NCBI GenBank assembly: GCA_965112735.1
Contig: OZ218961.1
Span: 868,001 to 932,000 of the forward strand
Source of the DNA: Phaeosaccion multiseriatum
Lineage: Eukaryota > Protista > Ochrophyta, other classes
DNA length: 64,000 bases
Direction of reading: 5' to 3'
Position numbers and translations under genes: made by a program. Of the stretch, positions 6,545 to 56,142 are shown piece after piece; position 1 is the stretch's first letter; each line of letters starts with the position of its first letter. The notes below the pieces were generated by a model, which saw only the letters and a list, made by a program, of their open reading frames with translations, was not told the origin of the DNA and ran no database searches.

Positions 6545-8347
6545 TCATGCCGCACCGGTGACCCGCATCACCACCACCCCCGGGTTTTGTTCATCCCCCC
6601 GTGCTTCGACTCCTGCTCTCTCCTGCAAGTAGGCCAACACCACGGGCTTGAGAACGCTGATGCCGTCTTGTCCGTGACGGACTCGGCCTGTGACAACTTC
6701 GATCTCAACCCCCGCCTTCGCCTCTGAGAGCACGCACCGAAGCGCTGCCTTGCTTGTTCCCCTGGTGAAACCGCGCAAGTCCACCTTCGTTCCAGGCTCC
6801 GACCAGTGTGTGTAAAGCCCTGCCGACACGGCCTCTGCATACAGCTCGTCAGCAGCCTTCTCTTCTCCACCCTCCTGCACAGCATCAATGGTGGCGTTGT
6901 AGGCCGCTGTGTCAGGAGCGATTCCTTCCTCCTTCATATCGTTGAACAGCCTCAGGGCCTCCACGTGTTGCTTGGCCTTGGCGCATGCGTCAATGGTGGT
7001 CGTGTAGCTCCTTACATCGGGAGGGATTCCTTCTGCCTTCATCTCCTGCAATAGCCCCAGTGTCTCCACGTGCTGGTTGGACTTGGCGTATGCGGCGATG
7101 GTGGCGTTGTAGGAACGTACGTTGGGGTGGATTCCTTCCTTCTTCATCTCCCTCAATAACTCCAGTGCCTCCTCGTGTTTGTTGGCCTTGGCGCATGCAT
7201 CAATGGTGCTGGTGTAGCTAACTACGTCAGGGGCGACTCCTCCTGCCTTCATCTCCCTCAATAACTCCAATGCCTCCACGTGTTTGTTGGCCTTGGTGCA
7301 TGCGTTCATTGCGACGTTATATATGAATACGTCAGGGGCCAGTCCTTCCTTCTTCATCTCCCTCAATAGCCCCAGTGCCTCAACGTGTTGGTTGGCCTTG
7401 GCGCATGCGTCAATGGTGGAGTTGTAGCTGATCACGTCAGGAGCGACTCCTTCCTTCTTCATCTCCCTCAATACCCTCAGTGCCTCAACGTGTTGGTCGG
7501 CCTTGGCGCATGCGTCAAGGGTGGAGTTGTAGCTGATTACGTCAGGAGCGACTCCTTCTGCCTTCATCTCCCTCAATAACCTCAGTGCCTCCACATGCTG
7601 CTTGCCCTTGGCGCATGCGTCAATGGTGGCGTTGTAGCTGAGTACGTCAGGGGCGACTCCTTCTGCCTTCATCTCCCCCAATAACCCTAGTGCCTCCGCG
7701 TGCTGCTTGGCCTTGGCGCACGCGTCAATGGTGGCGTTGTAGCTCCATACATCGGGACGGAGTCCTTCTGCCTTCATCTCCCTCAATAACCTCAATGCCT
7801 CCACGTGTTGGTTCACCTTGGCGCATGCGTTGATGGTAACGTTGTAGCTGATTACTTGAGGGGCAATTCCTTCTGCCTTCATCTCACTTAATAGCCTCAA
7901 TGCCTCAACGTATTGGTTGGCCTTGGCACATGCGTTAATGGTGGAGTTATAGGTTACTACAGTGGGTGCGATTCCTTCCTTCTTCATCTCTGCCAGAAGG
8001 GCCAGTGCGCCCTTCCACCGCCCGCACTTCCCAATGACAGAAATCGCAGTATTTAGGCAGTACAGACCGGGCTTCAGGCCCTCGCGTCGTGCTCGTTCCA
8101 GAGTAGGTGCAACCCTCTTCCAATCCTTGCTCTTGCCCAGAGCTTGGATCTCCTTCAGGAGCCGCATCTGCCTCGACTTGTCACCCCGCTTAGTGGAGAA
8201 GCTGGACCATTGCTGCTGCAGCGGCTTCTGCTGGTGGAGAGTGGAGTCGGTGCGCCGTTCTGCTCCAAGTCCTGTTCTCCTACCAGTGCAGGAGGAGTAG
8301 CAGGTTCTCGCCACCCTCCTCAACGACATCACTCGCATCAGGATCAT
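6545..8347 (-). CDS. Intronless P-class PPR-SMR protein (12 PPR repeats plus C-terminal Smr domain), probable mitochondrial presequence
   Basis: 35-aa repeats PDVISYNSTIDACAKANQHVEALRLLREMKAEGVA. C-terminus VDLRG..IEVVTGR..VLKPVVLAYL..NPGVV is Smr-like. Arg/Ser-rich N-terminus MILMRVMSLRRVARTCYSS. Confidence 0.92.
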   Translation of the reverse strand: MILMRVMSLRRVARTCYSSCTGRRTGLGAERRTDSTLHQQKPLQQQWSSFSTKRGDKSRQMRLLKEIQALGKSKDWKRVAPTLERARREGLKPGLYCLNTAISVIGKCGRWKGALALLAEMKKEGIAPTVVTYNSTINACAKANQYVEALRLLSEMKAEGIAPQVISYNVTINACAKVNQHVEALRLLREMKAEGLRPDVWSYNATIDACAKAKQHAEALGLLGEMKAEGVAPDVLSYNATIDACAKGKQHVEALRLLREMKAEGVAPDVISYNSTLDACAKADQHVEALRVLREMKKEGVAPDVISYNSTIDACAKANQHVEALGLLREMKKEGLAPDVFIYNVAMNACTKANKHVEALELLREMKAGGVAPDVVSYTSTIDACAKANKHEEALELLREMKKEGIHPNVRSYNATIAAYAKSNQHVETLGLLQEMKAEGIPPDVRSYTTTIDACAKAKQHVEALRLFNDMKEEGIAPDTAAYNATIDAVQEGGEEKAADELYAEAVSAGLYTHWSEPGTKVDLRGFTRGTSKAALRCVLSEAKAGVEIEVVTGRVRHGQDGISVLKPVVLAYLQERAGVEARGDEQNPGVVVMRVTGAA

Positions 8348-9254
8348 TTGTTTTTGTATACATGTAGCTCTTCCCTCTTGCGTCTTTCGTATGGAACGCC
8401 ATCTGTGTTTGAGTAGTACAACACGTGCACCTGCTCGTCTCTTTTTCTCTCTCCCTTCACGCGCACACACACGCACTTTCAGTTTCTTAGGTGACTCCTA
8501 TTTAATACGCCCTCTCTCTCCCTTCGTGGACGACGCTGCTTGCCTCTGAGCGAAGGGGCGTCGCCGAGGAGGAAGATGGTGAAATGGAGGAGGAGCGGTA
8601 GCAGCTGTGGAGGCGGCGACAGAAGAGGGAGGGGAGGTATTCCAATTGGAGTCTCTTAATATCGGCGGTATACAGAGAGTGGCGTAGCTACTGCTTTGTG
8701 ACGATACCACTCATCCGGCAGACCGAGACGAGTCTTGTGAAGAACGTGGTGAGTGGCCCTCAGAAGAGCGTGTACTCTCAGCCATGCTCATCACAGTCAG
8801 TGCAGTGTCTTTCGGGGATTCATGATCATGACGTAACGTATGAAACACATGTAACGCATGTAGTGCGTGTAGTGCAGGTGCGAGCCCCTCCACCACATAG
8901 TCTGCCCCTGGGAGGAATTGGCGTGCTGTCTCGCATGCAGCGATGAACGAGCGACACAGTCATGAACGACCGGCACAGGCCCGTCTGCCTTTGCCCCAGC
9001 AGGACCTGCGCTGGTCCCGTAGGAGAGAGTGGAGCGCTTCGGGGCAGCTGCTGGAGTGGCTTGGCTTGCCTCCCTCCGAAGAGAGAGAGAGAGAGAGGTG
9101 AGCTGGATTAGATGTGATTGGGACGAGAGTGAATGCGTGTGGGTCCAGAGACCAGTACAGAGGAGGAGCAAGCACAGTACTTCGAACAACAGGGCTTGTG
9201 TGTGTAGTATTAATCGAGGTCAATAAACTCAATGAACTGAAGTTGGCACTAACA

Positions 9255-9794
9255 TTACGCTCCAGCGCTGGCCGAGGCCGCCTCTGTTGCCGCCCCCGCC
9301 GCTGCCGCTTTCTGTCGACTCTCCTCCTCCTCCCTCTCCATCTCCTCCATCGCTTGGCGGAAGCTCTTGGCGCAGTGGGATCGCTTCGGACTGAGCATCG
9401 TCTTCATAAACTCCGCCTGGGGCGTGGTGTAGTACGGGTTGTCTCTCACAATTGGCACAAAGCCATCCGGCTTCTCCCACTGCGGGTCGTGGGTGTGGCT
9501 GTTGACATAGTACAGTGCCCCGCTCTCAGGATCCACCTCCTCCACCCACTCCGGCGGCTCCCACTGACTTATCCCACTGGCGGAGTGGAAGTAGTATGTA
9601 GACCCATCCTCGTCGTGAAGCTCGTACCAGCACTCCTCGTCTGCCTCTCCATCATCATTGTCGCTGGAGTCTTCAAAGATACGTAGAGGGTCGCTGCCCT
9701 CCTCGCCCTCCCCCTCACCCTGCCCTACGAGCAGAGCTACGTGGCTGGGAGCCAGATGATACCAAAGCCCAGGCCCGGAGTGAAGCTCGTGCAT
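9255..9794 (-). CDS. Tandem WW-domain ORF or orphan exon
   Basis: WYELHDEDGSTYYFHSASGISQWEPP and WVEEVDPESGALYYVNSHTHDPQWEKP are two canonical WW domains. The true 5' end is unclear. Confidence 0.65.
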   Translation of the reverse strand: MHELHSGPGLWYHLAPSHVALLVGQGEGEGEEGSDPLRIFEDSSDNDDGEADEECWYELHDEDGSTYYFHSASGISQWEPPEWVEEVDPESGALYYVNSHTHDPQWEKPDGFVPIVRDNPYYTTPQAEFMKTMLSPKRSHCAKSFRQAMEEMEREEEESRQKAAAAGAATEAASASAGA

Positions 9795-9835
9795 GCCTCC
9801 TCCGGCCGGCGACTTCTAACAGGCGCTGTCGGAAC

Positions 9836-10054
9836 TCATGCCGCACCAGTGATCCGCATGACCACCCTCCCGGGGTTGTTTTCGTCTTCCCATGCTTCGA
9901 CTCCTGCTCTCTCCTGTAAGTAGGCCAACACCACAGGCTTGAGAACGCTGATGCCGTCCTCACTGCCTCGACCAACTTCGATCCCAGCCCCCGCCTTCAC
10001 CTCTGAGGGCACGCACCGAAGCGCTGCCTTGCTTGTTCCCCTGGTGAAAGCGCG
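9836..10054 (-). pseudogene. Smr-domain coding remnant downstream of the premature stop in PPR copy 2
   Basis: After TAA (10055-10057) the frame continues RAFTRGTSKAALRCVPSEVKAGAGIEVGRGSEDGISVLKPVVLAYLQERAGVEAWEDENNPGRVVMRITGAA*, collinear with copy 1. Confidence 0.8.
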
Positions 10055-12046
10055 TTAGCCCCCGTACCTCCCAGGCTCCGACCAGTGTGGATAAATCCCT
10101 GCCGACACGGCCTCTACGTACAGCTCGTCAGCAGCGTCCTCTTGTCCACCCTCCTCCAAGGCACCAATGGTGGCGTTGTAGGTCCTTTCGTCAGGAGCAA
10201 TTCCTTCCTCCTTCATCTCCGTCAACAACCTCAATGCTTCCACGTGTTGGTCGGCCTTGGCGCACGCGTCAATGGTCGTATTGTAGCTGATTATGTCAGG
10301 TGCGACTCCTTGTGACTTCATCCCCCTCAATAACCCCAGTGCCTCCACGTGTTGCTTGGCCTTGGCGCATGCGTCAATGGCGGAATTGTAGCTGATTACG
10401 TCAGGAGCGATTCCTTCCTCCTTCATCTCATTGAACAGCATCAGAGCCTCCATGTGTTGCTTGGCCTTGGCGCATGCGTCAATGGTGGTCGTGTAGCTCC
10501 ATACATCGGGATGGATTCCTTCTGCCTTCATCTCCTGCAATAGCCCCAGTGCCTCCACATGTTGCTTGGCCTTGGCGCATGCGTCAATGGTGCTGTTGTA
10601 GCTGATTACGTCAGGAGCGATTCCTTCCTCCTTCATCTCATTGAACAGCCTCAATGCCTCCACATGTTGCTTGGCCTTGGCGCATGCGCTGATGGTGGCG
10701 TTGTAGCTCCTTACATTGGGATGGATTCCTTCCTCCTTCATCTCCCTCAATAGCCTCAATGCCTCCACGTGTTTGTTGGCCCTGGCGCATGCATCAATGG
10801 TGCTGGTGTAGCTGACTACGTCAGAGGCGACTCCTTCTGCCTTCATCTCCCTCAGTAGCCTCAGTGCCTCCACGTGTTCGTTGGCCTTGGCGCATGCGTC
10901 AATGGTGCTGGTGTAGGATCGTACATCGGGATGGATTCCTTCCTTCTTCATCTCCCTCAGTAGCCTCAATGCCTCCACGTGTTCGTTGGCCTTGGAGCAT
11001 GCGTCAATGGTGGTCGTGTAGCTCCTTACATTGGGACGGAATCCTTCTGTCTTCATCTCCCTCAACAACCTCAGTGCCTCCACGTGTTGCTTGGACTTGG
11101 TGCATGCATCAATGGTGGTGTTGTAGCTGATTACGTCAAGGGCGACTCCTTCCTCCTTCATCTCCCTCAATAACCTCAATGCCTCCACGTGCTGCTTGGC
11201 CTTGGCGCATGCGTCAATTGTGGTGTTGTAACTGATTACGTCGGGGGCGACTCCTTCTGCCTTCATCTCCCTCAATAGCCGCAATGCCTCGACGTGCTGG
11301 TTGGCCTTGGCGCATGCGTCAATGGTGACGTTGTAGCTCCTTACATTGGGAGCGAATCCTCCTGCCTTCATCTCCCTCAACAACCTCAATGCCTCCACGT
11401 GTTGGTTGGCCTTGGCGCATGCATTAATCGTGGCGTTGTAGCTCCTTACATTGGGATGGATTCCTTCTGCCTTCATCTCCCGCAATAGCCTCAATGCCTC
11501 CACGTGTTGGTTGGCCTTGGCGCATGAATCAATGGTGCTGTTGTAGCTGACTACGTCAGGGGCGACTCCTCCTGCCTTCATCTCCCTCAACAACCTCAAT
11601 GCCTCCAGCTGTTGCGTGGCCTTGCCGCATGCGTTGATGGCGGCGTTGTAGCTGATTACGTCAGGTGCGATTCCTGCCTTCTTCATCTCTGCCAGAAGGG
11701 CCATTGCGCCCTTCCACCGCCCGCACTTCCCAAATGCGGAAATAGCAGCATTCATGCAGTACAGATCAGGCTTCAGGCCCTCGCGCCGTGCGCTCTCCAG
11801 AGTAGATGCAACCCTCCTCCAATCCTTGCTGTTGCCCAGAGCTTGGATCTCCTTCAGGAGCTGCACCTGCCTCGACTTGTCACCCCCCTTCGTGGAGAAG
11901 CTGGACCATTGCTGCTGCAGCGGCTTCTGCTGGTGGAGAGTGGAGTCGGCGCGCCGTTCTGCTCCAAGTCCTATTCTCCTACCGATGCAGGAGGAGTAGC
12001 AGGTTCTCGCCACTCTCCTCAACGACATCACTCGCATCAGGAGCAT
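10055..12046 (-). CDS. Intronless PPR protein (16 repeats), tandem paralog of 6545-8347, truncated before Smr
   Basis: Same repeat consensus and N-terminus (MLLMRVMSLRRVARTCYSS). An alternative in-frame ATG lies at 12127. Confidence 0.88.
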   Translation of the reverse strand: MLLMRVMSLRRVARTCYSSCIGRRIGLGAERRADSTLHQQKPLQQQWSSFSTKGGDKSRQVQLLKEIQALGNSKDWRRVASTLESARREGLKPDLYCMNAAISAFGKCGRWKGAMALLAEMKKAGIAPDVISYNAAINACGKATQQLEALRLLREMKAGGVAPDVVSYNSTIDSCAKANQHVEALRLLREMKAEGIHPNVRSYNATINACAKANQHVEALRLLREMKAGGFAPNVRSYNVTIDACAKANQHVEALRLLREMKAEGVAPDVISYNTTIDACAKAKQHVEALRLLREMKEEGVALDVISYNTTIDACTKSKQHVEALRLLREMKTEGFRPNVRSYTTTIDACSKANEHVEALRLLREMKKEGIHPDVRSYTSTIDACAKANEHVEALRLLREMKAEGVASDVVSYTSTIDACARANKHVEALRLLREMKEEGIHPNVRSYNATISACAKAKQHVEALRLFNEMKEEGIAPDVISYNSTIDACAKAKQHVEALGLLQEMKAEGIHPDVWSYTTTIDACAKAKQHMEALMLFNEMKEEGIAPDVISYNSAIDACAKAKQHVEALGLLRGMKSQGVAPDIISYNTTIDACAKADQHVEALRLLTEMKEEGIAPDERTYNATIGALEEGGQEDAADELYVEAVSAGIYPHWSEPGRYGG

Positions 12047-12796
12047 TTCTAAGACATTGCTGCTGCTGCTCTTCTGTAGCTGCTTTTGTGCACTTTTTAA
12101 GCTCTTGCTCTTCGTATGGAACGCCATCTGTGTTTGAGTAGTACAACACGTGCACCTGCTCGTCTCTCTGTCTTCGCGCGCGCGCACACACACACTTTCA
12201 GTTTCTTAGGTGGCTCGTATCAATAAATACGCCCTCGCTCTCCCTTTGTGGACGAGGCTGCTCGCCGATGAGCGAAGGGGCGTCGCCGAGAGGAAGATGG
12301 TGAAATAGAGGAGGAGCGCCTAGCAGCTGCGGAGGCGGCGGCGGAAGAAGCAGGGGTGCTCTCCCACCGACCATGAGGAAACAATCGTGAACAGCTTGTG
12401 AAAGGCGGCATGGCAGTTTGGTGTCTGGGCCGGCTGTGGTGGCCTGCTCTCGCCAGCAGCGACGAGGAGAAGAAACACTTCTCAGGTGGTGTCTGCGATG
12501 CTATAGACCTCGTGATTTCATGGCAAGGGCGGCCTTCATCGCATTCGCAGAGTTTTGAAGTGCCACGATGGAAGTCACGAAGCAAGAATGGGGACTACTA
12601 AGAATTACGGAGAAGAGGAGAAGCGGGGAGGGGGGGGGGGGGGTGTCGTCATATCACTTTCCCCCCTTTCCCCAATCCAAGGTATATCTTACATATATTT
12701 TTACGGTGGCTCAACACTAGAGAGGGAGAGTGAGAGGGAGGGGGAGAGAGAGAGAGAGAGATACACAAGCAGAAGCCCTTTCTCGTTCTTGCTTCC

Positions 12797-15700
12797 TCAC
12801 CACCCCACCCTTCTGCTCGTCGACTTGTGCATGTGTGCGCGGATACTCGCCTCAATTTTCCGCATGAAGCTCTCTTTCATTGATCCATTGTACAGTGGCA
12901 TGAACACAGCGCGGCCTACTCGCCTCCCTCCTCCTCCTCCTCCTCCTCCTCCTCCTCCTCCTCCTGCTGCTGCTGCTGCTGCTGCTCCTGCTCCTCCTCC
13001 TCCTCCTCCTGCTGCTGCTGCTGCTCCTCCTCCTCCTCCTCCTCCTCCTCCTCCTCCTCCTCCTCCTCCTCCTCCTCCTCCTCGTCCTCGTCTTCGTCCT
13101 CCTGTACCCGTGAGTGTTGCTGCTGCTGTCCCTTCTCCTGCTGCTGCTGCTACTGCTCCTCCTGTTGCCTCCCCCCCTCCGCCTCCTCCTCCAGCTGCGT
13201 TTACAACTCCCTCTCCACCTCCCACACCCCCGTCGCCACCTTCCCCTTTCCCTTCTCCTCCTCCTTCCCCTTCAAGCCCCCCGTCTCCTTCTTCTCTTTC
13301 TTCTCCTTCTCCTCCTTCTGCTCCTTCCCTTTCACCCCCCCACCCCCCTCCTCCTCCTCCTCCTCCTCCTCCTCCTCCTCCTCCTCCTCCTCCTTCTGCT
13401 GCTGCTGCTCCTCCTCCTCCTCCCCCTCCTCTTCGTCCCTCTGCAGTCGTCTGCACTCCACCGATCTTCACCCCCTTCACTACGGTGTTGTACACCCTTA
13501 CAGTCCTATACACAACATCATCCCCGGAGGGGTGGTCTTCTTCCTCGTCCAAGGTGCCTTGAATCATTGCCCTGGTGAAGAACAACGTACACACACACAC
13601 ATGCACATAAACACACGCACACACACACATGCATATACGGACACACACGCACATAAACACACGCACACACACACACATGGACATACACACGCAAACACAC
13701 ACACGTACATACACACATGCAACGTAGGACGTGGCTGAGAGGGAGAAAGAACAAATATGCTCACAGAAGCCTCACTGACGTACTGCCACCCACTGACGTA
13801 GTGCCATGGCCTCGGGCACCCTTACCGCCCCCCTCCTTCCCTACTTCCCTCCTAATCTCTCACACCCTGCACACCCCTGCCCCCCTCCCCTCTAACCCGT
13901 CCCTCCCTCCCTCCCTCCCTCCTCCTCCCTCCCCCCCCTCTCTCCCTCCCTCCCTCCCTCCCTCCCTCCCTCCCTCCCTCCCTCCCTCCCTCCCTCCCTC
14001 CCTCCCTCCCTCCCTCCCTCCCTCCCTCCCTCCCTTCCTTCCTTCCTTCCTTCCTTCCTCCTTTCTTCTCACTGACCTGGCGTCGGCAATCGTTGTCTTC
14101 GCATTCGCCGCCCCCCCTCCCAGGCCTTGCGCCCTCCTCTGTTCTCTCACCGCAATCACGTGTTGCGCTCGCGATTCCTTTAACAACCCCTCCACTACAC
14201 GGATCCTCACCGCCCAGGGAGCCGCATCACTTTCCCCTAGTAGTTCTCGTATGAGTCCCAGCCACTCCGGACGGCTCAACGCCTCGGTGATGGTCATGTT
14301 CCATACAGATGGCGCCGGAGAGGATGAACCACCAACCGTTGTACCACAACCACCACCACCAGCATCCGCACCAGCGGCAGCAGCAGCAGTAGGGGAGGAT
14401 GGTTCCTCAACCCCCCCCCCCCCCCTCCCCTTACCTCCTCCCCGACTTCCCGAAGCCCCGCCTCTACCTTTGGCTCTACCCCCTCTTCCTCCCCCCGCCC
14501 CTTGGCGTTTCACCAGCTGCCGACCCTTGCCGTTTTGCTGCTCCTGCGACGACCCAGGGGGCTTGGTCCTGCGTCCTCCTCCTCCTCCTCCTCCTCCTCC
14601 TCCTCCTCCTCCTCCTCCTCCTCCTCCTCCTCCTCCTCCTCCTCCCCCTCCTCCTCCCCCTCTGCCGCCGCCGCCACCCCGTTTAGTAGCGTTGCCACCC
14701 GGTGAGGACTCGGTCCCTGGCGACGCAGCAGCACCGTCGGGACCGAAGCTGGTGTCTGGCTGCTCTCGACTTCTGTTAGTGGTGACTTCTCGGCTTCCCA
14801 AATCGAGACTGCTGCTGCGTGAAAGCAGTCTCCGCCCCCCCCCTCCTCCTCCTCCTCCTCCTCCTCCTCCTCCTCCTCCTCCTTCATCCAACGTGCCACA
14901 AATACCTGCCCCGGTGCTTTCGATGTCGTGTTGGAACTGAGCTCGAAGCTTCTTGCTCAAGGAAGCACTCTGTATTGGGAGGGAGAGGACAGGAGAGGAG
15001 GAGAGAAGAGAGAGGGAGGGGGGGGGGAGGGAAGTGGGGAGGGAGGGAGGGAGGGAGGGAGGGAGGGAGGGAGGGAGGGAGGGAGGGAGGGAGGGAGGGA
15101 GGGAGGGAGGGAGGGAGGGAGGGAGGGAGGGAGGGAGGGAGGGAGGGAGGGAGGGAGGGAGGGAGGGAGGGAGGGAGGGAGGGAGGGAGGGAGGGAGGGA
15201 GGGAGGGAGGGAGGGAGGGAGGGAGGGAGGGAGGGAGGGAGGGAGGGAGGGAGGGAGGGAGGGAGGGAGGGAGGGAGGGAGGGAGGGAGGGAGGGAGGGA
15301 GGGAGGGAGGGAGGGAGGGAGGGCGCCGCCGCTGGCATGAGGGAGGAGACACAACATGGGAATTGAATAGAACGGAACCGACCTTCTGCAGGTTGAGGGA
15401 TGGCAGTGGATGGGTGGAGGGACACAACGAGGGATGGCAGTGGATGGAGGGAAGGAAGGAGAGAGGGAGAGACGGCAGTGGCAGGAGGGGGGGAGGGAAG
15501 GATGGCAGCAGATGGAGGGACGAAGAGACAGGAGAGAGATGGCAGTGGATGGAAGGGAAGGGAACCAATACCGACCTTCTGCAGGTTCTTGAGGGTGTCC
15601 TTCTTCTTGTTGTTCATGGTGTGAGAAAGGTTAGACACCCAACGGATCTCCGGCACAAGGAAACCGCCAGCGTAGCCAGGGTGTCCCTGATTCCCCTGGG

Positions 15701-25357: not shown

Positions 25358-26488
25358 ATGCAGGAGGGAAGTGGTGGTACTGGAGTTGGGAGCAGTGCAG
25401 AAGAAGGGACGGCAGCAGCTCGGGACGCCGTAGCCGTCAACGGGTATAGCAGCAAGGAGACGGGAGTCGCGGTCGAGGGCAGCAACGGCCTTGATGGCGA
25501 CCCCCAGACCGGCGGAAAGGGCCTCGTCCCTGCCACAGAGTCGAGGGGGGATGTGCCGTCTTCTCTCCAGCTCTGTCAGCAGCAGGAGGTGGGCTGCTCC
25601 TTGGGAGGGAGCATTGGGCTGATCCCCACCGGTCTCCGAGAGTGCCTTGTACCCATCAAGATTAACATTGAGAGCGACGGTATGCGAGTGCTGGATACAG
25701 TCGAGTGGAACCTGCATGACGACCAGCTCTCCCCAGAGGCGTTTGCTTCGCTCATGGCCTCCGACCTCGACCTTTCGGACGGTATGGAGAGGGCGATCGC
25801 CCTGCAGATTAAGGAGCAATTAGACTGCTTCGAGGCCGCCACGCCGCTGTGGATGCAGGAGGGGGCGAGTATGACTCGTGTGCTGAGAGGGCCGCAAACT
25901 TACAGCAGCAGCAGCAGCAGCACCGAGAGGAAGAGGAAGAGGAGCAGGAGTAGTGAAGGCACTGGTGCTGCCACCACCGTCAATGGAGCAGGAGGGGGAG
26001 GAGAAGAAGAAGGAGAAGACCAAGAGAAGCAGGCAGAGACAGCACCCGTGCTATTGTTGCACGAGGTAGGGGTGGAACTGACGGACCTCCGAGAGCTCAG
26101 GCTTGACATACGATTGGGCGGTATCAGGTACACAGATCGACTGGAGTGGGACATCAACAATCCTCTCAACGACGCTGCCGAGTTCGCCAGGGTAACCGTC
26201 GATGACCTGGCCCTTCCGCAGGAGTTCGAGAACGCCATTTCCTCGTCTATTCACGAGCAATGCGTCAATATTTTGCAAGTAGCGTGCCGGGTGCCGGGCA
26301 AAGTGGTGCTGGCGAAGACTGGTGATGGTGGTGGTGGGGGGGGGGTAGCAGGCCGCAGCTTGGTTGGGGGCGGGGGGCGTGCAGTGAGGAAGCGGCGGAG
26401 GGGGAAGGGTGCAGAGGAGGAGGAGAACGAGGAGGAGGGGGGGGGGCAAGAACGTGAACAGGACGACTCAAGGGAGAAGAGCAACGGC

Positions 26489-26537
<49 letters not shown>

Positions 26538-27766
26538 GCAGCAGCGGCAGGACAAAGATTAAGAATGGGAAGAAGGTACAGAGCAACGAAGGAGATGGGG
26601 CAGGGGCTAATGCTTACAACTCTGGCGGCACGGACAAAAGCAACATCATAAGAACGAAGGGAGAAGCCAAGGAGTGGAGCCACAGTGTGCGCCTGGTGGG
26701 TCCCATGGAGCAAATGGATTTCCGGTCCGAGGTGTACAAGTACTATCGCCCGTCTTCGCACCCCTCCCACGCCGTCCTCCGTCTACAGGAAGACCTCTCT
26801 CATCGAGGGGAAGGAGGAGGCATGCCCCACGGGGGCTCTTCTTCGGATTCGAGCTTTCGCCTCTCTGGAGGAGGCACCAACCGCTCTGACATTCTGGAAA
26901 GAATGGCCCATTTGCATTACGTAAGGGGCCCCCCTCCCTTTGGTGAAGGGGATCCACAGGAGCAGCTGCAGCAGCAGGAGCAGGGGCAGAAAACCAGCGC
27001 TGCAGGGGGCGGCGGCGGTGACGGCGGCGGTGGAGGGTCGGGATCGTCATCGTCAGGCGGACACAGGAGTGGCGGGGGTGGGGGTGAGGGGCCTGACGGG
27101 GGGCGTAGAGGAAGTCACCACAGTCATAACAGTCATAACAGCAGCAGCAGCTCTTTGACATCTGCAGCAGGGGCGGGTCGACAGGGGACAGTGCAGGGGC
27201 AGGGGCAGGCTATGCCAGCAGAAGAATGGGGCGGGGAGGGGGGCACCGGGGCTGGGGAGGGGAGCAATGGCGTGATGGAAGACCAGGAAGCAGCAGCAGT
27301 TAGTAGTACAGCAGCCGGAAGGAGAGCAGCTGCGGCAGTCACCTCCTCCTCCCCCTCTTCATCATCTGCCACTGCCCCGACCACCGCCTCCGCCTCGTCC
27401 CCTTCCTCCGCTTCTTCCAAGTCGAGAAGCGACAACAACAAGAGAGGCACGCCCCCTTTGCCGCCCTCGCAGCAGGCAGAGGGGGGCTTACTTCAGGGGG
27501 CGCCGCATCAGCAGGTGCAGCAGCAGGGAGGAGGAGGTGGAGGAGGAGGAGGAGGAGGAGGAGGAGGAGAAGGAGGAGGAGGAGGAGGAGGAGGAGGAGG
27601 AGGAGGAGGAGGAGGAGGAGGTGGCGGTGGGGGGGGGGGGGGGGGGCGGGGACGGGGGCTTCTTGCAGCAAGCAGTGGCGCAGCAGCAGCACCATCAGCA
27701 GCAGGATGTGCACGCGCAGCAGCGACAACAACAACAACAGCAGCACCAGCAACAGATTCAGTGGCA

Positions 27767-27811
<45 letters not shown>

Positions 27812-29518
27812 ACAGAAGCTCCATCAGTATCAGCAGCAGCGAGCCCAGCAGTTTCAGCAGCACCCCGCTCCGCCGGCCCAGCAGCAGCAGCAGCCGCAGC
27901 AGCTACACCCGTCGCCCTCCCATCCCCAGCCTCCCCCTCCTCAGCAGCAGCAGCAGCAGCAGCAGCAGATGGCACCCTCTGAGGCGATGCTGGCTCAACA
28001 GGAGAAGGAAAGGCAGCAGAAGAAAGCACTGAAGAAGATGAAGAGACAGCAGCTCGCACAGAGGAAGAAGGCGGAGCAGCAGCAGGCGATGCTCGTGCAG
28101 CAAGAGCATGAGCGACTCCAGCACCAGCAGCAGCAGAAGCAGCAACAACAACAACAGCAGCAGCAGCAGCAGCAGCAGCATGAACTTGCCCTCTACCAAC
28201 AGGCACAGCAGGCGCAGTTGCTCTCTCCCTCATGGATGGGTGATTACAGGTAAAGTGGCAGTCCGAGTCAGCAGGGAAGGGACAGAGAGGGGGGTTGAAA
28301 GGAGCAGGAAGGAGTGGACGTCTTCTTTTGACCCCATGCATTCCAGTTCGATCGATCCATTCCTTCGATGATTGTGTTGCTTTCTTTGTTGCTGTTGTGC
28401 CTTCTAGACAGCCCCCTCTATCCTGGCACCTTCGCCGCTGCTGCCGTCCTTTGGAAGCTTTTGACTTCATTTGGCCTTCTCGCAAGTGCTGACTCTCTCC
28501 CCGCACCACCATCGGTGTATTCTCCTCCTCTTCTCCCCTCCCATCTCCTCTCCTCTCCTCTTCTCCCCTCCCTTGTCTTCTCCTCTTCTCTCCTGTCCCA
28601 TTCCTCTCCCCTCCTCCACTCGCCTCCTCTCCTTGCCTCCCCTTCCTCTTCATCAGCCATACACAGCAAGGACAGGGCCAGCAGACACCACCGCCTCACC
28701 CCCAGCAGCAGCAAATGCTCCAACTGCAGCAGCAGCATATGGGCCAACAACAACAACAGCAACAGTTGGTGCTACAGCAGCAGCAACAGCAACAGCAACA
28801 ACAACAGCAACAGCAGCAGCAACAACCGCAACAACAACGGCAGCAGCAGCAGCAGCAGCAGCAACCGCAGTACCACCATCCCCACCAGCAGCAGCACCAG
28901 GGACAGGGACAGGGACAGGGACAAGGACAACACGTGTCTATGCTTCAAATGCGTCAGCACCAGCACCAGGAGCAGTACCATGAGCGGCAGCTCCACCACC
29001 TCATGCTGCTTCAGGACGATCAACCTCAGGACCAACAGCAGGGGCAGGGGCAGGGGCAGCATGCACCGTCCACCGCCGCCCCACCGCCGCCACAGCCGGG
29101 GTCGCAGGGCTCACACCAGCAGATTCTGCCAACACACCAGCAGCTACAGCTACGACAGATGCAGCAGCAGCAGCAGCAACACCAGCAGCAACAGGCTCAG
29201 CAGCAGCATGGACAGGGGCAGGGGCAGGGGCCGATTCAGCAGCAGCAGTTGGTGATACAGCAGCAGGATGGCGCAGCACAGTCGTCTCCAAGAGCAGGTG
29301 GGGGCGAAGGAGGAGGAGGAGGAGGAGGAGGAGGAGGAGGAGGAGGAGGAGGAGGAGGAGAAGGAGGAGGAGAAGGAGGAGGAGGAGGAGGAGGAGGAGG
29401 AGGAGGAGGAGGAGGAGGAGGAGGGGCAGATGGGAATACGAATGGGAGGGTGGGCATGGGACGACAGCAGCAGCAGCCACCCTTGGATCCGTCGAACGGG
29501 ACGGGTCAGGATGCCTAA
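25358..29518 (+). CDS. SNF5: SNF5/SMARCB1/SFH1-family chromatin remodelling subunit with long Q/G-rich tail
   Basis: Two SNF5 repeats: LVPIKINIE..LDTVEWNLHD..SPEAFA..ASDLDL..IALQIKEQL and LRLDIRLG..YTDRLEWDINN..AEFARVTVDDLALPQEFENAISSSIHEQ. One frameshift at G18 (27629-27646). Intron ~28250-28657. Confidence 0.85.
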
Positions 29519-31013: not shown

Positions 31014-31470
31014 GGTTTCTGGCTGCAGTACTGTAGTACTTCGCTCGAGGGCACAGCAGCACGCAAGGGATTTTGCTGAGACAGAGGAGAGAAGAAGGGA
31101 AACTGTAAGGGGCCGACTCTCTTTCTAGTGCTGCGGGTACGTACTTAACTCCCGAGACGGACGGTGGGGATAATTTGTCTTCTGTGAGAATGGAGGAGAA
31201 AGGCAACAACACCAACACAGAACTTGCTGCTTTTCCGGCCTCACTCCTGCTTCCCCGCCCCCACGCCCGCTCACCCGGCCCCTCCCTTCACCTACTCCGC
31301 TTTTCTCATTGTGCGTGCCGCTGCTGCTGCTCCCCTTACGCAGAAACTCAAAAGGATCGACTCATTCATACATCAGCCTGCTTGCTGCCTTTGGCTTTCC
31401 TTGCTGTGTCTGAGTGGGGCTTGGCTGGGAGCAGCAAAGCAGCAAGGCAGCAAAGAGAAAGAAGGAAGGG

Positions 31471-32880
31471 ATGAGCCAGGTCCGGGGAATGACAGTAGCC
31501 TCCACCGAAGCGCGCGGGCCTTCCGCCGATGCCGTGGCGTCCAAGGCTTCCGAGCCACCGGCTGCAGCACCCGCAGACTGGGATGGGGTGGAGGTACTGA
31601 GTGTGTTGGCTGCGAATGTGGGCTCCTTCCGCAGTCTGTGGGGCCTGTGTAGTGAGGTGGATGCAGTAGCCGGCAGGCGAGTTGCCCTGCACGGGACCAT
31701 GTCTAAGGCTGTTCAGGGCAGAATCCTGGACATGCTCGAGCACCAACAGCGATTGGATTTGAAAGGAAGGACCTTTTCTGCTGCTATTGGGAAGTGGCAG
31801 ACCACCCAGGGCTACCAGGGGGAGAAGGGTGGTGATAATGATGATCAAGTTCGTGGCAGGCGTTGCTTCTCCATCGCGGCGGTGACGCTGGGGCTCACCA
31901 CCTCTTTGTATCCCGGGGCCTCTGACGGGACGAGGATGGCGGACATTGCCCGTGTGCAGGCAGGGCTGACAATGCTTCCTCCTTCGCTCAAGCATCTTCG
32001 CTTCGGGGACTACTTTACGGCTCCTGAGTTACGCCTCTTGGACTTGTTTCCACTACTGGAGAGTTTGCATTTCGGGGACGCTTTCGATGGAGAGGTTCAG
32101 CTGCCGCACGGCTTGGCGGAGCTGAGCTTTTCGCACCTCTCCGCATTCAATCGGCAAGTGACCCTTCCTCCATCGCTGCGCAAGATTACTTTTGGGTGGC
32201 ACTTTAATCAGGCTGGCTTGATTCTACCCGAGGGTCTGGAGGAAGTGGTCTTTGGCCCTCTGTTTGATCGGCAAGTGGCACTTCCCTCGTCGCTTCGGAA
32301 GATTACCTTTGGAGAAGACTACGATCAGCGGGACGTGCTTTTGCCCAACTGTCTAGAAGAGGTTTGCTTTGGGGACGCTTTCAATGAGCCCATAGTCCTT
32401 CCCTCATCGCTGAGAAAGATTTTGTTTGGTTATCACTTTAATCAGCGCTTGACTCTGCCCGGCTCCATAGAAGAGGTGGATATGGGCCCCAGGTTTGAGC
32501 ACCCTTTGGTCCTTCCCTCCTCACTCCGCAAGTTGCGTTTTTGTGAATCGTCTTGGTTCAATCAGCCATTGACCCTTTTTCCTGCCTCTCTTCGGACTCT
32601 GGAGCTGGGCATGTGTTACAAGCAGCCCTTATCGGATCTGCCTGATGGGCTGGAGGAGCTCAAGTTTAGCGAGCCCTCGTTGTTCAATCATCCACTCACC
32701 CTTCCTGCCTCTCTTCGGATTCTGAGGCTGGGGAGGAAGTACACACAGCCCCTCTCGACTCTGCCCCCCGGTCTGGAGCTGCTCGTCGTTTCAGAGAACT
32801 TCGACCTCCCTGAGGACCTGCCCGAGGGTGTTGAGGTCAAACGATTGAAGGCCCTGCACTGCCACGGCATAATCTTTTAG
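31471..32880 (+). CDS. Intronless FNIP-repeat protein with putative F-box-like N-terminus
   Basis: About 13 x 21-aa repeats LPSSLRKITFGxxFNQPL, typical of FNIP. Confidence 0.85.
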   Translation: MSQVRGMTVASTEARGPSADAVASKASEPPAAAPADWDGVEVLSVLAANVGSFRSLWGLCSEVDAVAGRRVALHGTMSKAVQGRILDMLEHQQRLDLKGRTFSAAIGKWQTTQGYQGEKGGDNDDQVRGRRCFSIAAVTLGLTTSLYPGASDGTRMADIARVQAGLTMLPPSLKHLRFGDYFTAPELRLLDLFPLLESLHFGDAFDGEVQLPHGLAELSFSHLSAFNRQVTLPPSLRKITFGWHFNQAGLILPEGLEEVVFGPLFDRQVALPSSLRKITFGEDYDQRDVLLPNCLEEVCFGDAFNEPIVLPSSLRKILFGYHFNQRLTLPGSIEEVDMGPRFEHPLVLPSSLRKLRFCESSWFNQPLTLFPASLRTLELGMCYKQPLSDLPDGLEELKFSEPSLFNHPLTLPASLRILRLGRKYTQPLSTLPPGLELLVVSENFDLPEDLPEGVEVKRLKALHCHGIIF

Positions 32881-33333
32881 TTTTCTGGCTGCTCGACAAC
32901 GCTGATTTTACTCGTCTTGCGTGGCATCTCTTTGTGATGAAGGAGGAGGAGGAGCCCAAAAAAAAAGAAAAGAAAGTAGGTTGATCGAGATCCGATGAGG
33001 TTCAGAAGACCCAAATTTTCCCAACCCTGTTACGTGTTCGAGTGGTCTAAGAAGCTCGACTCAAGTTCGAGTATACAATGTATGCGAGAGTTCAAATCTC
33101 TCCGTTTGCAATTTTTTCTCTTTTTCTCTTTTTTTTTTTTTTTTTTTTCACTCCTCCTGGCTCCTCCATTTCCCCTCTCTCCACACACACACACACACAC
33201 ACACACACTCATTCTCTCTCTCTCACTGTGTGCGTGTGCAGCGTGCGTGACCGAGTGCTTGGGGGTTCCTGCTAAGCAGAGAGGTCCGATGGCAGTGGAT
33301 GGCCTCAGAGAAGGGGGTTCTGGCGTATGGGAA

Positions 33334-33862
33334 GATTTGTGTGTGATTTATGTGTGATTTTGTGTGATTTCATGTGATTATATGTGTGATTTTGTGTGAT
33401 ATTGTGTGTGATTTTATGTGATTATATGTGTGATTTTGTGTGATTGTGTGTGATTTTGTGTGATTTTGTGTGATTTCATGTGATTTTGTGTGATTTTGTG
33501 TGATTTTATGTGATTATATGTGTGATTTTGTGTGATTGTGTGTGATTTTGTGTGATTTTGTGTGATTTTGTGTGATTTATGTGTGATTATGTGTGATTTT
33601 GTGTGATTATGTGTGATTTTGTGTGATTTCATGTGATTATATGTGTGATTTTGTGTGATTTTGTGTGATTTTGTGTGATACTGTGAGTGATTTTATGTGA
33701 TTATATGTGTGATTTTGTGTGATTTTGTGTGATTTTATGTGATTATATGTGTGATTTTGTGTGATTGTGTGATATTTTGTGTGATTTTGTGTGATTTCAT
33801 GTGTGATTATATGTGTGATTTTGTGTGATACTGTGTGTGATTTTATGTGTGATTTTGTGTGA
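33334..33862. repeat. About 530-bp minisatellite, consensus TGTGATTTTG (~10-bp unit)
   Basis: About 50 variant units, almost C-free on the + strand. Confidence 0.92.
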
Positions 33863-34128
33863 ATGAATGCAATTTATTCAGAATTTATTAGAACAAAGAA
33901 ACACCCCTCAGCCCCAGTGATCGCCTCTCGACAAAAGGATGAGTCGGTGGAGCTGCGGCTAGGCTCTTGCTCTGGCTAAGCACCTCGCTGGCCAGTCTCG
34001 CCGCTCCTTCTCCTTGAGTCTAGTAAACTCTCCCCCCCCCCCCTCCTTAACATATCTGTCCTACCATAAACATCCATCTCTAACCCAGTCTAGCTGCTCT
34101 TGCCTGCTGGACACACACACAAGCCTCC

Positions 34129-54984: not shown

Positions 54985-56142
54985 TCAACATCCCCCCCGC
55001 TCGAACTTGTTTCCCCTCTCGTTGAGCAGGCCAAAATGCCTCTCGGTCTCCAACCCTTCCTTTCTGTTGCCGTCGGCCATCTGAAAGAGGTACATGCTCA
55101 CGCTTCTTTCTCGAGCCCACTGCAGCACGCCCCTGGTAAACGCCGCAGCATTCTCCGCTGTGGCGTGCTTTGCCCCCCTCGTCGGCCAACCTGTCTCTCC
55201 GACCACAACCTCCAAGCTGTCGTCCGCCTCCTCCCTCGTCGCTCCTCCTCCTTCTTGTCCTTCTCTCACTCTACGGACGGCCGCGACAACTGCGTCGTAC
55301 ATTCCAGACATGAGGTCGGTGTAGCGCGTGCCTTGATCATCGTAGCCCTGCCCTCCATTGCGAAAGGTGGCATACTCGACCGACACGTCGGGCCCAAGGG
55401 CAAAGTAGGGGTAGATGTTGATCAAGAAGGGGCTCCCTCGCTGCTTGGCCTTTTCCTCGTACAAAAACGCCACCACGCCCTGCATCACCTCCAGCACTGA
55501 GGAGTCGAACTCTCCCCTACTGGGCGGGTACGACATGCCCATGATTGACATGTCAAGCGGAGTGGTAACCTTCACCAGCGGGTGGCCTGCCACATCGAGA
55601 GCCTCTCGCAACCCTCTCAAATTCTTCACCAGAATAGAGACAAAGCGTCCCCTATTCTGGTGCGAAAGGACCTCGTTCCCGACGCAGATGGTTAGCTTGG
55701 GGGCCATCTCTGGCTTGGGAAGCTGTATGTGGTCCTCTACCCAGTTGGTCCAACCCTTTCCGCCCCTGATGCGAAGAACTTCATGGTTGGGCACGGCCAC
55801 CATCACCGCCGAGATGTGGTCCTGCTGGAGGTAGTGCGAGTAGGTCTTAACGTTTGTGTCAAACAACTTCACTGCCTGTACGCCTCGGTACGACAAGGAG
55901 GGAGTATCGGTCTTCGGCTGCTGCTGCTGCAGAGCACGTATCGTGGAGGACACCTCGGAAGGTCTCCAAGGTCGCGAGCTCAGTTCTCCGACGTTGACTC
56001 CGAGCAAAGCTCCGCCAGCAGCGGCGGTACAGGAGGCCGCATCTGCATTACTAGTGGGAGGAGGCAGTTGCTGCTGCTGCGGCTTTGCGACTTCTCCCTG
56101 GAGCGCCTTCCGCAACTTCCTGAACACCTTCTTCAGCACCAT
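54985..56142 (-). CDS. Glycoside hydrolase family 17 beta-1,3-glucanase, intronless CDS
   Basis: GVNVG, ICVGNEVL (acid/base Glu), PFLINIYPYF, VVVGETGWPT (nucleophile Glu), ERHFGL. Confidence 0.92.
   Translation of the reverse strand: MVLKKVFRKLRKALQGEVAKPQQQQLPPPTSNADAASCTAAAGGALLGVNVGELSSRPWRPSEVSSTIRALQQQQPKTDTPSLSYRGVQAVKLFDTNVKTYSHYLQQDHISAVMVAVPNHEVLRIRGGKGWTNWVEDHIQLPKPEMAPKLTICVGNEVLSHQNRGRFVSILVKNLRGLREALDVAGHPLVKVTTPLDMSIMGMSYPPSRGEFDSSVLEVMQGVVAFLYEEKAKQRGSPFLINIYPYFALGPDVSVEYATFRNGGQGYDDQGTRYTDLMSGMYDAVVAAVRRVREGQEGGGATREEADDSLEVVVGETGWPTRGAKHATAENAAAFTRGVLQWARERSVSMYLFQMADGNRKEGLETERHFGLLNERGNKFERGGC

Follow-up and report, generated by a model that had tools for sequence, protein, structure and literature searches.

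Two neighbouring genes for pentatricopeptide repeat (PPR) proteins on contig OZ218961.1 of the ochrophyte alga Phaeosaccion multiseriatum (GenBank assembly GCA_965112735.1) raise the question of whether a eukaryotic genome may encode RNA nucleases that are re-programmed by recombination of their repeats, as an earlier note on this DNA had proposed. The genes, here called A and B, lie on the minus strand within a stretch of 64,000 nucleotides (positions 868,001 to 932,000 of the contig), referred to below as the window, whose numbering is used throughout. The reading that we favour, at a probability of about 0.6, is that A and B arose by birth-and-death turnover within an expanded PPR-SMR family (PPR proteins that end in an Smr domain), probably mitochondrial, and that they are sequence-specific RNA binders whose nuclease action is doubtful.

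Genes A and B are two uninterrupted minus-strand open reading frames (ORFs; Table 1), confirming the description of the pair as intronless paralogs. A single BLASTN homology block connects the two halves of the locus (A 6545-8634 with B 9836-12356), extending from ~290 bp upstream of the ATG to the terminal TGA of each copy, where homology ends, as had been claimed. The near identity of the N-termini and upstream DNA is likewise borne out: the first 129 codons are 91% identical in DNA, the homology continues over the ~290 bp upstream, and a 40-nt upstream block is identical in the two genes and occurs nowhere else in the window. The start of gene A was placed at the first Met conserved with gene B, for which an alternative in-frame Met start exists at 12127. 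A conserved upstream ATG (ATGGCGTTCCATACGAA; 8405-8420 in A and 12112-12127 in B, minus strand) is in frame in gene B and, via two 13-nt indels, out of frame in gene A; it could represent an upstream ORF or an alternative start. The word tandem applies to the pair in part, as the paralogs lie within 6 kb of each other but are not directly adjacent: an ORF with two WW domains (9255-9794, minus strand; Pfam E 2e-17) stands between them. The ATG of this ORF is only ~42 nt downstream of the terminal TGA of gene B, an unusually tight spacing. No further copy of the PPR, Smr or N-terminal sequence was found in the window by tblastn.

The repeats themselves are the most conspicuous property of the pair. 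Tandem Repeats Finder reports a 105-bp unit in 10.5 (A) and 14.5 (B) copies with 80-81% matches, Pfam PPR_2 stretches number 11 in A and 15 in B, and strict tiling in steps of 35 residues yields 12 units in A and 16 in B, as the earlier note had counted, with the first and last units divergent. The motifs are arranged in tandem and have 35 residues without L or S variants, which places both proteins in the P class. Mean identity among the internal units is 79-82% in DNA and 70-73% in protein, whether the units compared come from one gene or from both. Compared with itself at a lag of 35 residues, A has an identity of 0.74 and B of 0.79, against a median of 0.27 for a control set of 193 proteins pooled from word-based and exhaustive PPR searches. 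Moreover, synonymous codons are common across the units (GTA in 22 of 24 at position 1, GGA in all 24 at position 31), indicating that the similarity comes from recent common ancestry or conversion and not only from constraint at the protein level. The claim that the 105-bp units are unusually alike in DNA (~80% identity) is therefore upheld.

The uniform arrays of A and B are unusual, yet the pair is not unique. Comparable lag-35 identities were obtained for the Symbiodinium protein P0137 (0.87) and for proteins of Effrenium (0.65) and Noctiluca (0.62), as well as for two PPR-SMR proteins: P0068 from a JGI metagenome (0.56) and P0047 from ENA (0.86), the latter ending in an Smr domain that bears VDLH and VTGYG. 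P0047 (ENA contig ctg9477, L001 10001-12697) consists of at least 10 nearly identical repeats of the SACEK type, discussed below, followed by an Smr-like segment, and is, as judged from its sequence, an independent homogenised PPR-SMR in another organism. Its genomic context was uninformative.

In 23 of the 24 internal units (9 of 10 in A and 14 of 14 in B), N or T occupies position 5 and D or N occupies position 35. Read with the standard PPR code, these residues give ? ? U U U U U U A U G ? for gene A and U U C C U U C G G A U U G U U ? for gene B. By the published code, gene A would thus read approximately UUUUUUAUG (units 3-11) and gene B approximately UUCCUUCGGAUUGUU (units 1-15), both being predicted targets. 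The statement that N/T at position 5 and D/N at position 35 occur in differing order in the two genes holds for nearly all units, and the assignment of A and B as P-class PPR paralogs with a clean N/T by D/N code and different predicted targets is supported.

Alignment of the arrays unit by unit reveals a colinear backbone (A1=B1, A3=B4, A4=B5, A5=B6, A9=B10, A10=B12, A11=B13 and A12=B16) that is interrupted by six or more whole-unit indels (B2, B3, B7, B11, B14 and B15; A2 and A8). The code also differs between homologous units, with ND in A3 but NN in B4, and ND in A6/A7 but TD in B8/B9. Synonymous divergence (dS) between the non-repeat flanks of A and B is ~0.15, and the internal units have a mean dS of ~0.45 with a ratio of nonsynonymous to synonymous divergence (dN/dS) of ~0.4. 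Several pairs of units are as young as the gene duplication or younger (dS = 0.10 for B3-B10, 0.14 for A6-A7 and 0.10 for A11-B13), so unit duplication or conversion continued around and after the duplication of the gene. Together, the whole-unit indels and the young unit pairs agree with the proposal that repeat recombination generates new specificities, and they support recombination at the level of the repeat as a process that reshapes the arrays and, with them, the predicted specificity.

The distribution of changes along the unit is a separate matter. In the unit tree, nonsynonymous changes peak at positions 2 and 6, with 13 at each; positions 9, 15, 22, 25, 29 and 32 come next. Entropy is highest at positions 2, 6, 29, 25 and 32, whereas the code residues 5 and 35 come approximately tenth or lower. 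In the tree of 24 units, residue 5 has three nonsynonymous and three synonymous changes and residue 35 four and two, and their sum of 7 to 5, does not exceed the 107 to 62 seen elsewhere (p = 0.76, Fisher test). Position 2, also regarded as part of the PPR code (PMC6662315), has 13 nonsynonymous changes and one synonymous change; its addition to residues 5 and 35 gives 20 to 6 (p = 0.13, a small sample of 24 units only). Positive selection at positions 5 and 35, for which the earlier note had suggested a test, is therefore not supported by these two genes, and the note's label "TALE-like" (resembling transcription activator-like effectors) overstates the likeness of units that are ~72% identical in protein, with variation that is spread along the unit and highest at positions 2 and 6.

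Whether the C-terminus of gene A could cleave RNA was approached through its fold and its motifs. Against the Pfam Smr family it scores 18.3 bits as the whole protein and 22.2 bits for the last 80 residues alone, below the threshold of 25.7 bits. A profile constructed with three PPR-SMR relatives matches the Smr domain of N4BP2 (E 5e-6) over a span that includes both motifs, and an AlphaFold2 model of the domain, with a predicted local distance difference test (pLDDT) value of 77, finds its best Foldseek matches in the Smr domains of N4BP2 and MutS2; these results together indicate that the tail has an Smr fold. By this modelled C-terminal domain gene A is effectively a PPR-SMR. The motifs are degenerate, with VDLR at the LDxH site and TGRV at the TGxG site, and lack the His of the former and the last Gly of the latter. 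The plant PPR-SMR SOT1 carries LDVR and TGTG and can act as a guided RNA endonuclease, and TGxG was found critical for its cleavage of RNA and LDxH for its cleavage of DNA (PMC6662315). As SOT1 needs TGxG, the TGRV of gene A renders the RNA-nuclease competence of its Smr domain, judged by this analogy, doubtful.

In gene B the ORF stops nine codons before the Smr-homologous tail. The TAA sits where gene A has the Leu of VDLR, the motif at the LDxH site reading YGG-stop-R, and four codons are missing at the TGxG site (V-GRG); the tail has no match to Pfam Smr. Between A and B, dN/dS is 0.50 for the N-terminus, 0.56 for the Smr tail and 1.2 for the last unit, and the likeness of the tail to the N-terminus in this respect indicates that the stop is recent. 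The claim of two PPR-SMR paralogs thus stands for gene A, with its Smr fold, and not for gene B, which is severed by the TAA in this assembly. The nuclease activity attributed to the pair is not supported in either copy, given VDLR and TGRV in gene A and, in gene B, an Smr sequence that lies behind a stop and has its TGxG site deleted. A 27-nt GT..AG intron (with CTAAC) spanning the TAA was considered and is unlikely, since the segment aligns codon for codon with the coding sequence of gene A; it is also disfavoured by a sense codon in a second sample (see below). Reassignment of the stop codon was rejected because TAA, TAG and TGA all terminate other ORFs in the window.

Public sequencing runs, used in the form of Logan contigs from three runs of one sample (S1; runs X1, X3 and X7) and one run of a second (S2), provide a further view of this region. 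Contigs from the three S1 runs confirm the TAA of gene B. The only S2 contig over the site reads TTG (Leu), giving YGGLR, and differs further by a 3-nt insertion and one substitution, the reading frame staying open to the end of the tail. In one S1 run, a 12-nt insertion restores TGLG with the stop kept. A 12-nt indel at 9972-9973 is present in X7 and absent from X1 and X3, though these are recorded as the same sample, and the disagreement suggests heterozygosity or mixed strains in S1. All four runs have loose contig ends that read ITGRG and then continue into the same downstream sequence; these come from paralogs with the canonical motif. Contigs matched to the region are for the most part only 90-95% alike, and half fit two places. 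This indicates many paralogous units in the genome and supports the further paralogs envisaged in the earlier note. Exact-match contigs specific to A and to B both occur in S2, placing both copies in the second sample. At their length, the contigs neither span an array nor allow the numbers of units to be checked.

Arg, Ser and Thr abound in the N-termini of A and B, which have no acidic residue before position 30 and no hydrophobic core. In an alga with a complex plastid, a presequence-like N-terminus without a signal peptide favours the mitochondrion, and A and B are probably imported into an organelle, most likely this one. On the same grounds of composition the mitochondrial aim foreseen for the pair is retained; for organellar parasites as the target we found no evidence. 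No relative with more than 50% identity emerged from a word-based search, an exhaustive HMMER search of 1.84 billion representatives or exact look-ups, and the proteins of the window are themselves absent from the collections. Neither a protein search nor a 23-nt unit pattern found paralogs or orthologs in metagenomes. The best PPR matches (at most 50% identity) belong to the ochrophytes Chrysoparadoxa, Chrysophaeum, Ectocarpus and Octactis and to dinoflagellates. The organism is very poorly sampled in protein collections; elsewhere in the window, an ORF with an SNF5 domain (25358-27982, plus strand) and one for a GH17 glucanase (54985-56142, minus strand) have distant relatives or none among 5.8 billion proteins.

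The mechanism that we propose from these observations is that A and B are local duplicates belonging to a family of intronless P-class PPR-SMR genes that is specific to the lineage and has expanded. Each protein would recognise single-stranded RNA of the organelle, each repeat reading one base by means of residues 5 and 35. The arrays are young and consensus-like and change by gain and loss of whole units, by duplication or conversion of units and by point changes at code and non-code sites, and through such changes the paralogs acquire different predicted specificities. The likely activity of A and B would be RNA binding, for example in protecting or defining the ends of transcripts or in acting near a start codon, and probably not cleavage. 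Gene A keeps the Smr fold with degenerate motifs, and gene B loses its Smr domain to a stop that is polymorphic between samples; both the motif loss and the polymorphic stop fit birth-and-death turnover in the family. A number of points weigh against this proposal. SOT1 cleaves RNA despite its LDVR, so, by analogy, the VDLR of gene A would not be disqualifying, and the effect of TGRV is itself only predicted from sequence. The dN/dS values of 0.4-0.6, and of 1.2 in the last unit, could reflect relaxed constraint, and one or both copies may be non-functional. Finally, organelle targeting is predicted from N-terminal composition alone, and no public run with the locus is labelled RNA.

Among the alternatives, the one that survives best, though we consider it unlikely, is that A and B belong to a family of re-programmable RNA endonucleases, in which repeat shuffling would yield new PPR specificities that direct an Smr nuclease at mitochondrial transcripts or at selfish elements in the organelle, an arms race comparable to that of the Restorer-of-fertility-like (Rf-like) PPR clusters of plants. 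The shuffling of units and the code changes between A and B are what such a system would display, the reads point to a large family with paralogs carrying canonical ITGRG, position 2 is the most variable (13 nonsynonymous changes to one synonymous) and a code residue, and SOT1 is a precedent for guided cleavage by a PPR-SMR (PMC6662315). Neither copy examined here appears equipped for it, however, with TGRV and VDLR in gene A and, in gene B, an Smr sequence behind a stop with the TGxG site gone; nor is there nonsynonymous enrichment at residues 5 and 35 (p = 0.76), and overall dN/dS is ~0.4.

A second alternative, to which we give little credence, is that one or both of the genes are decaying, functionless by-products of family turnover, with gene B a pseudogene in the assembled strain. 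The TAA and four-codon deletion of gene B, the polymorphism of indels and stop between and within samples, the degenerate Smr motifs of gene A and the dN/dS values (0.5-0.56 for the N-terminus and the Smr tail, 1.2 for the final unit) are in favour of decay. Both arrays, however, are open over 1.8-2.0 kb, uninterrupted by any other stop or frameshift; all but one of the 24 internal units retain canonical code pairs, and dN/dS is below 1 in most comparisons. A PPR protein without an Smr domain is, moreover, a normal and functional architecture. That the difference in copy or unit number is an artefact of assembling a repetitive region is highly improbable: the Logan contigs are too short for either array and many fit two places, but the units differ by ~20% and so are individually distinguishable, the flanks of A and B differ with a unique WW-domain gene between them, and exact A-specific and B-specific contigs occur in the second sample.

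The positions of all features of the two genes are collected in Table 1. Of the surrounding DNA, a 500-bp block of CCT-type trinucleotides (12927-13431) lies ~600 bp upstream of the gene B homology block and reads as poly-Pro/Ala or poly-Gly ORFs on both strands. Farther away, an ORF with FNIP repeats (31414-32880, plus strand; Pfam E 3e-41) adjoins the only low-GC stretch of the window (32001-34000; GC 0.457 compared with ~0.57 elsewhere).

Table 1. Coordinates of genes A and B and of their parts in the window.
Feature	Positions	Strand	Remarks
Gene A, intronless PPR-SMR coding sequence	6545..8347	minus	600 aa + TGA; ORF list; Pfam PPR_2 E 3e-134
Gene A Smr domain	6548..6784	minus	Fold present (modelled); motifs VDLR (for LDxH) and TGRV (for TGxG)
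Gene A PPR array	6806..8065	minus	12 units, 35 aa each; first and last divergent
Gene A presequence	8171..8347	minus	~59 aa; putative mitochondrial-type targeting peptide
Gene A upstream DNA common to gene B	8348..8634	minus	5' untranslated region or promoter; from homology
Gene B Smr-homologous tail	9836..10054	minus	In frame behind the TAA; ends in TGA 9836-9838
Gene B in-frame TAA	10055..10057	minus	Separates PPR array from Smr-like tail
Gene B, intronless PPR coding sequence	10055..12046	minus	663 aa, ends at premature TAA; Pfam PPR_2 E 7.5e-187
Gene B PPR array	10085..11764	minus	16 units
Gene B upstream DNA homologous to that of gene A	12047..12356	minus	From homology

Taken alone, the locus is of more modest significance, in that it documents unit-level recombination together with the loss or degeneration of the Smr domain within one family. 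A bolder proposition, which we put forward as speculative and rather improbable, is that it is one node of a genome-wide, fast-turnover family of consensus-like PPR-SMR proteins, in which shuffled units and switches in the two-by-two code would keep generating new RNA specificities, and whose members with an intact TGxG would be guided organellar RNA endonucleases. If true, this would give designer PPR nucleases a natural counterpart and would extend Rf-like arms races beyond the land plants; the strain-polymorphic stop of gene B would then have caught birth-and-death turnover in progress. As a rule, PPR-SMR proteins are few and ancient, with degenerate repeats, and a large, young, near-consensus family with a clean N/T by D/N code would differ from them. 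The RNA targets of such a family would be predictable directly from sequence; it would allow a test of PPR specificity evolving by unit shuffling outside land plants, and it might supply natural scaffolds and Smr domains for engineered proteins that bind or cleave RNA.

Among the known systems nearest to A and B are the PPR-SMR proteins of plants, of which there are few (eight in Arabidopsis) and which are also present in heterokonts (PMC3858433). A and B share with SOT1/PPR53, GUN1, ATP4/SVR7 and PPR-SMR1 a P-class tract and, by prediction for A and B, organelle targeting, and gene A, by its modelled fold, has in common with them an Smr domain of subfamily 2 at the C-terminus (PMC3858433, PMC6662315); the LDVR of SOT1 and EMB2217 resembles the VDLR of gene A. 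They differ in that the plant repeats are degenerate, whereas those of A and B are near-consensus (~72% identical); in that the plant proteins are a small set of ancient orthologs, whereas A and B are intronless and appear to come from a many-membered, recently duplicated family; and in that gene A has a disrupted TGxG (TGRV) while gene B is cut off from its Smr domain.

A second point of comparison is provided by the SACEK PPR proteins of lineages whose plastids are of red-algal origin (dinoflagellates, cryptophytes, alveolates, stramenopiles and haptophytes), in which runs of similar repeats have been described from dinoflagellates, heterokonts, cryptophytes and haptophytes (Safonov and Berdieva 2025, in PMC12787238). 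They are defined by S-A-C-E-K at positions 9-13 and a downstream Trp in consecutive repeats, and dinoflagellates have 1-5 PPR-SMR proteins per species (PMC12787238). The highly similar repeats, the x-A-C-x-K block and the fusion of some members to Smr are common ground. The internal units of A and B have D/N-A-C-A-K at positions 9-13 (A10, C11 and K13 in 23 of 24), differing from SACEK at positions 9 and 12, and are without the downstream Trp, which occurs in unit 1 only. Identity between SACEK proteins and A and B is at most 50%, and in place of the one to five PPR-SMR genes of a dinoflagellate this genome apparently has many.

With the Restorer-of-fertility-like (RFL) clusters of flowering plants, the pair shares clustered P-class paralogs (two within 6 kb, with more elsewhere indicated by the reads), birth-and-death evolution, changes of specificity and probable mitochondrial targeting. 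RFL proteins have no Smr domain, and their repeats are not homogenised at the DNA level; selection at code sites is not demonstrated in A and B, and no link to the land-plant RFL clade emerges from the named near matches (up to 50% identity), which are ochrophytes and dinoflagellates, most of the top 150 bearing no name. In designer PPR proteins (dPPR and cPPR), near-identical scaffolds of 35 residues have their base set by N or T at position 5 and D or N at position 35; A and B use the same two-by-two code, unlike them being natural proteins with units that differ at ten or more other positions. The repeats of TAL effectors are more than 90% identical and vary almost only at two specificity residues. 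The likeness lies in tandem repeats that are alike in DNA, in the reading of one base per repeat and in repeat numbers that vary between paralogs; the difference lies in the spread of variation, highest at positions 2 and 6 in A and B, and in a target that would be RNA. Overall, proteins of this kind are already known; the novelty lies in how uniform the repeats are, in the clean two-by-two code and in the apparent size of the family, together with a tandem pair that combines unit indels with polymorphic loss of the Smr domain.

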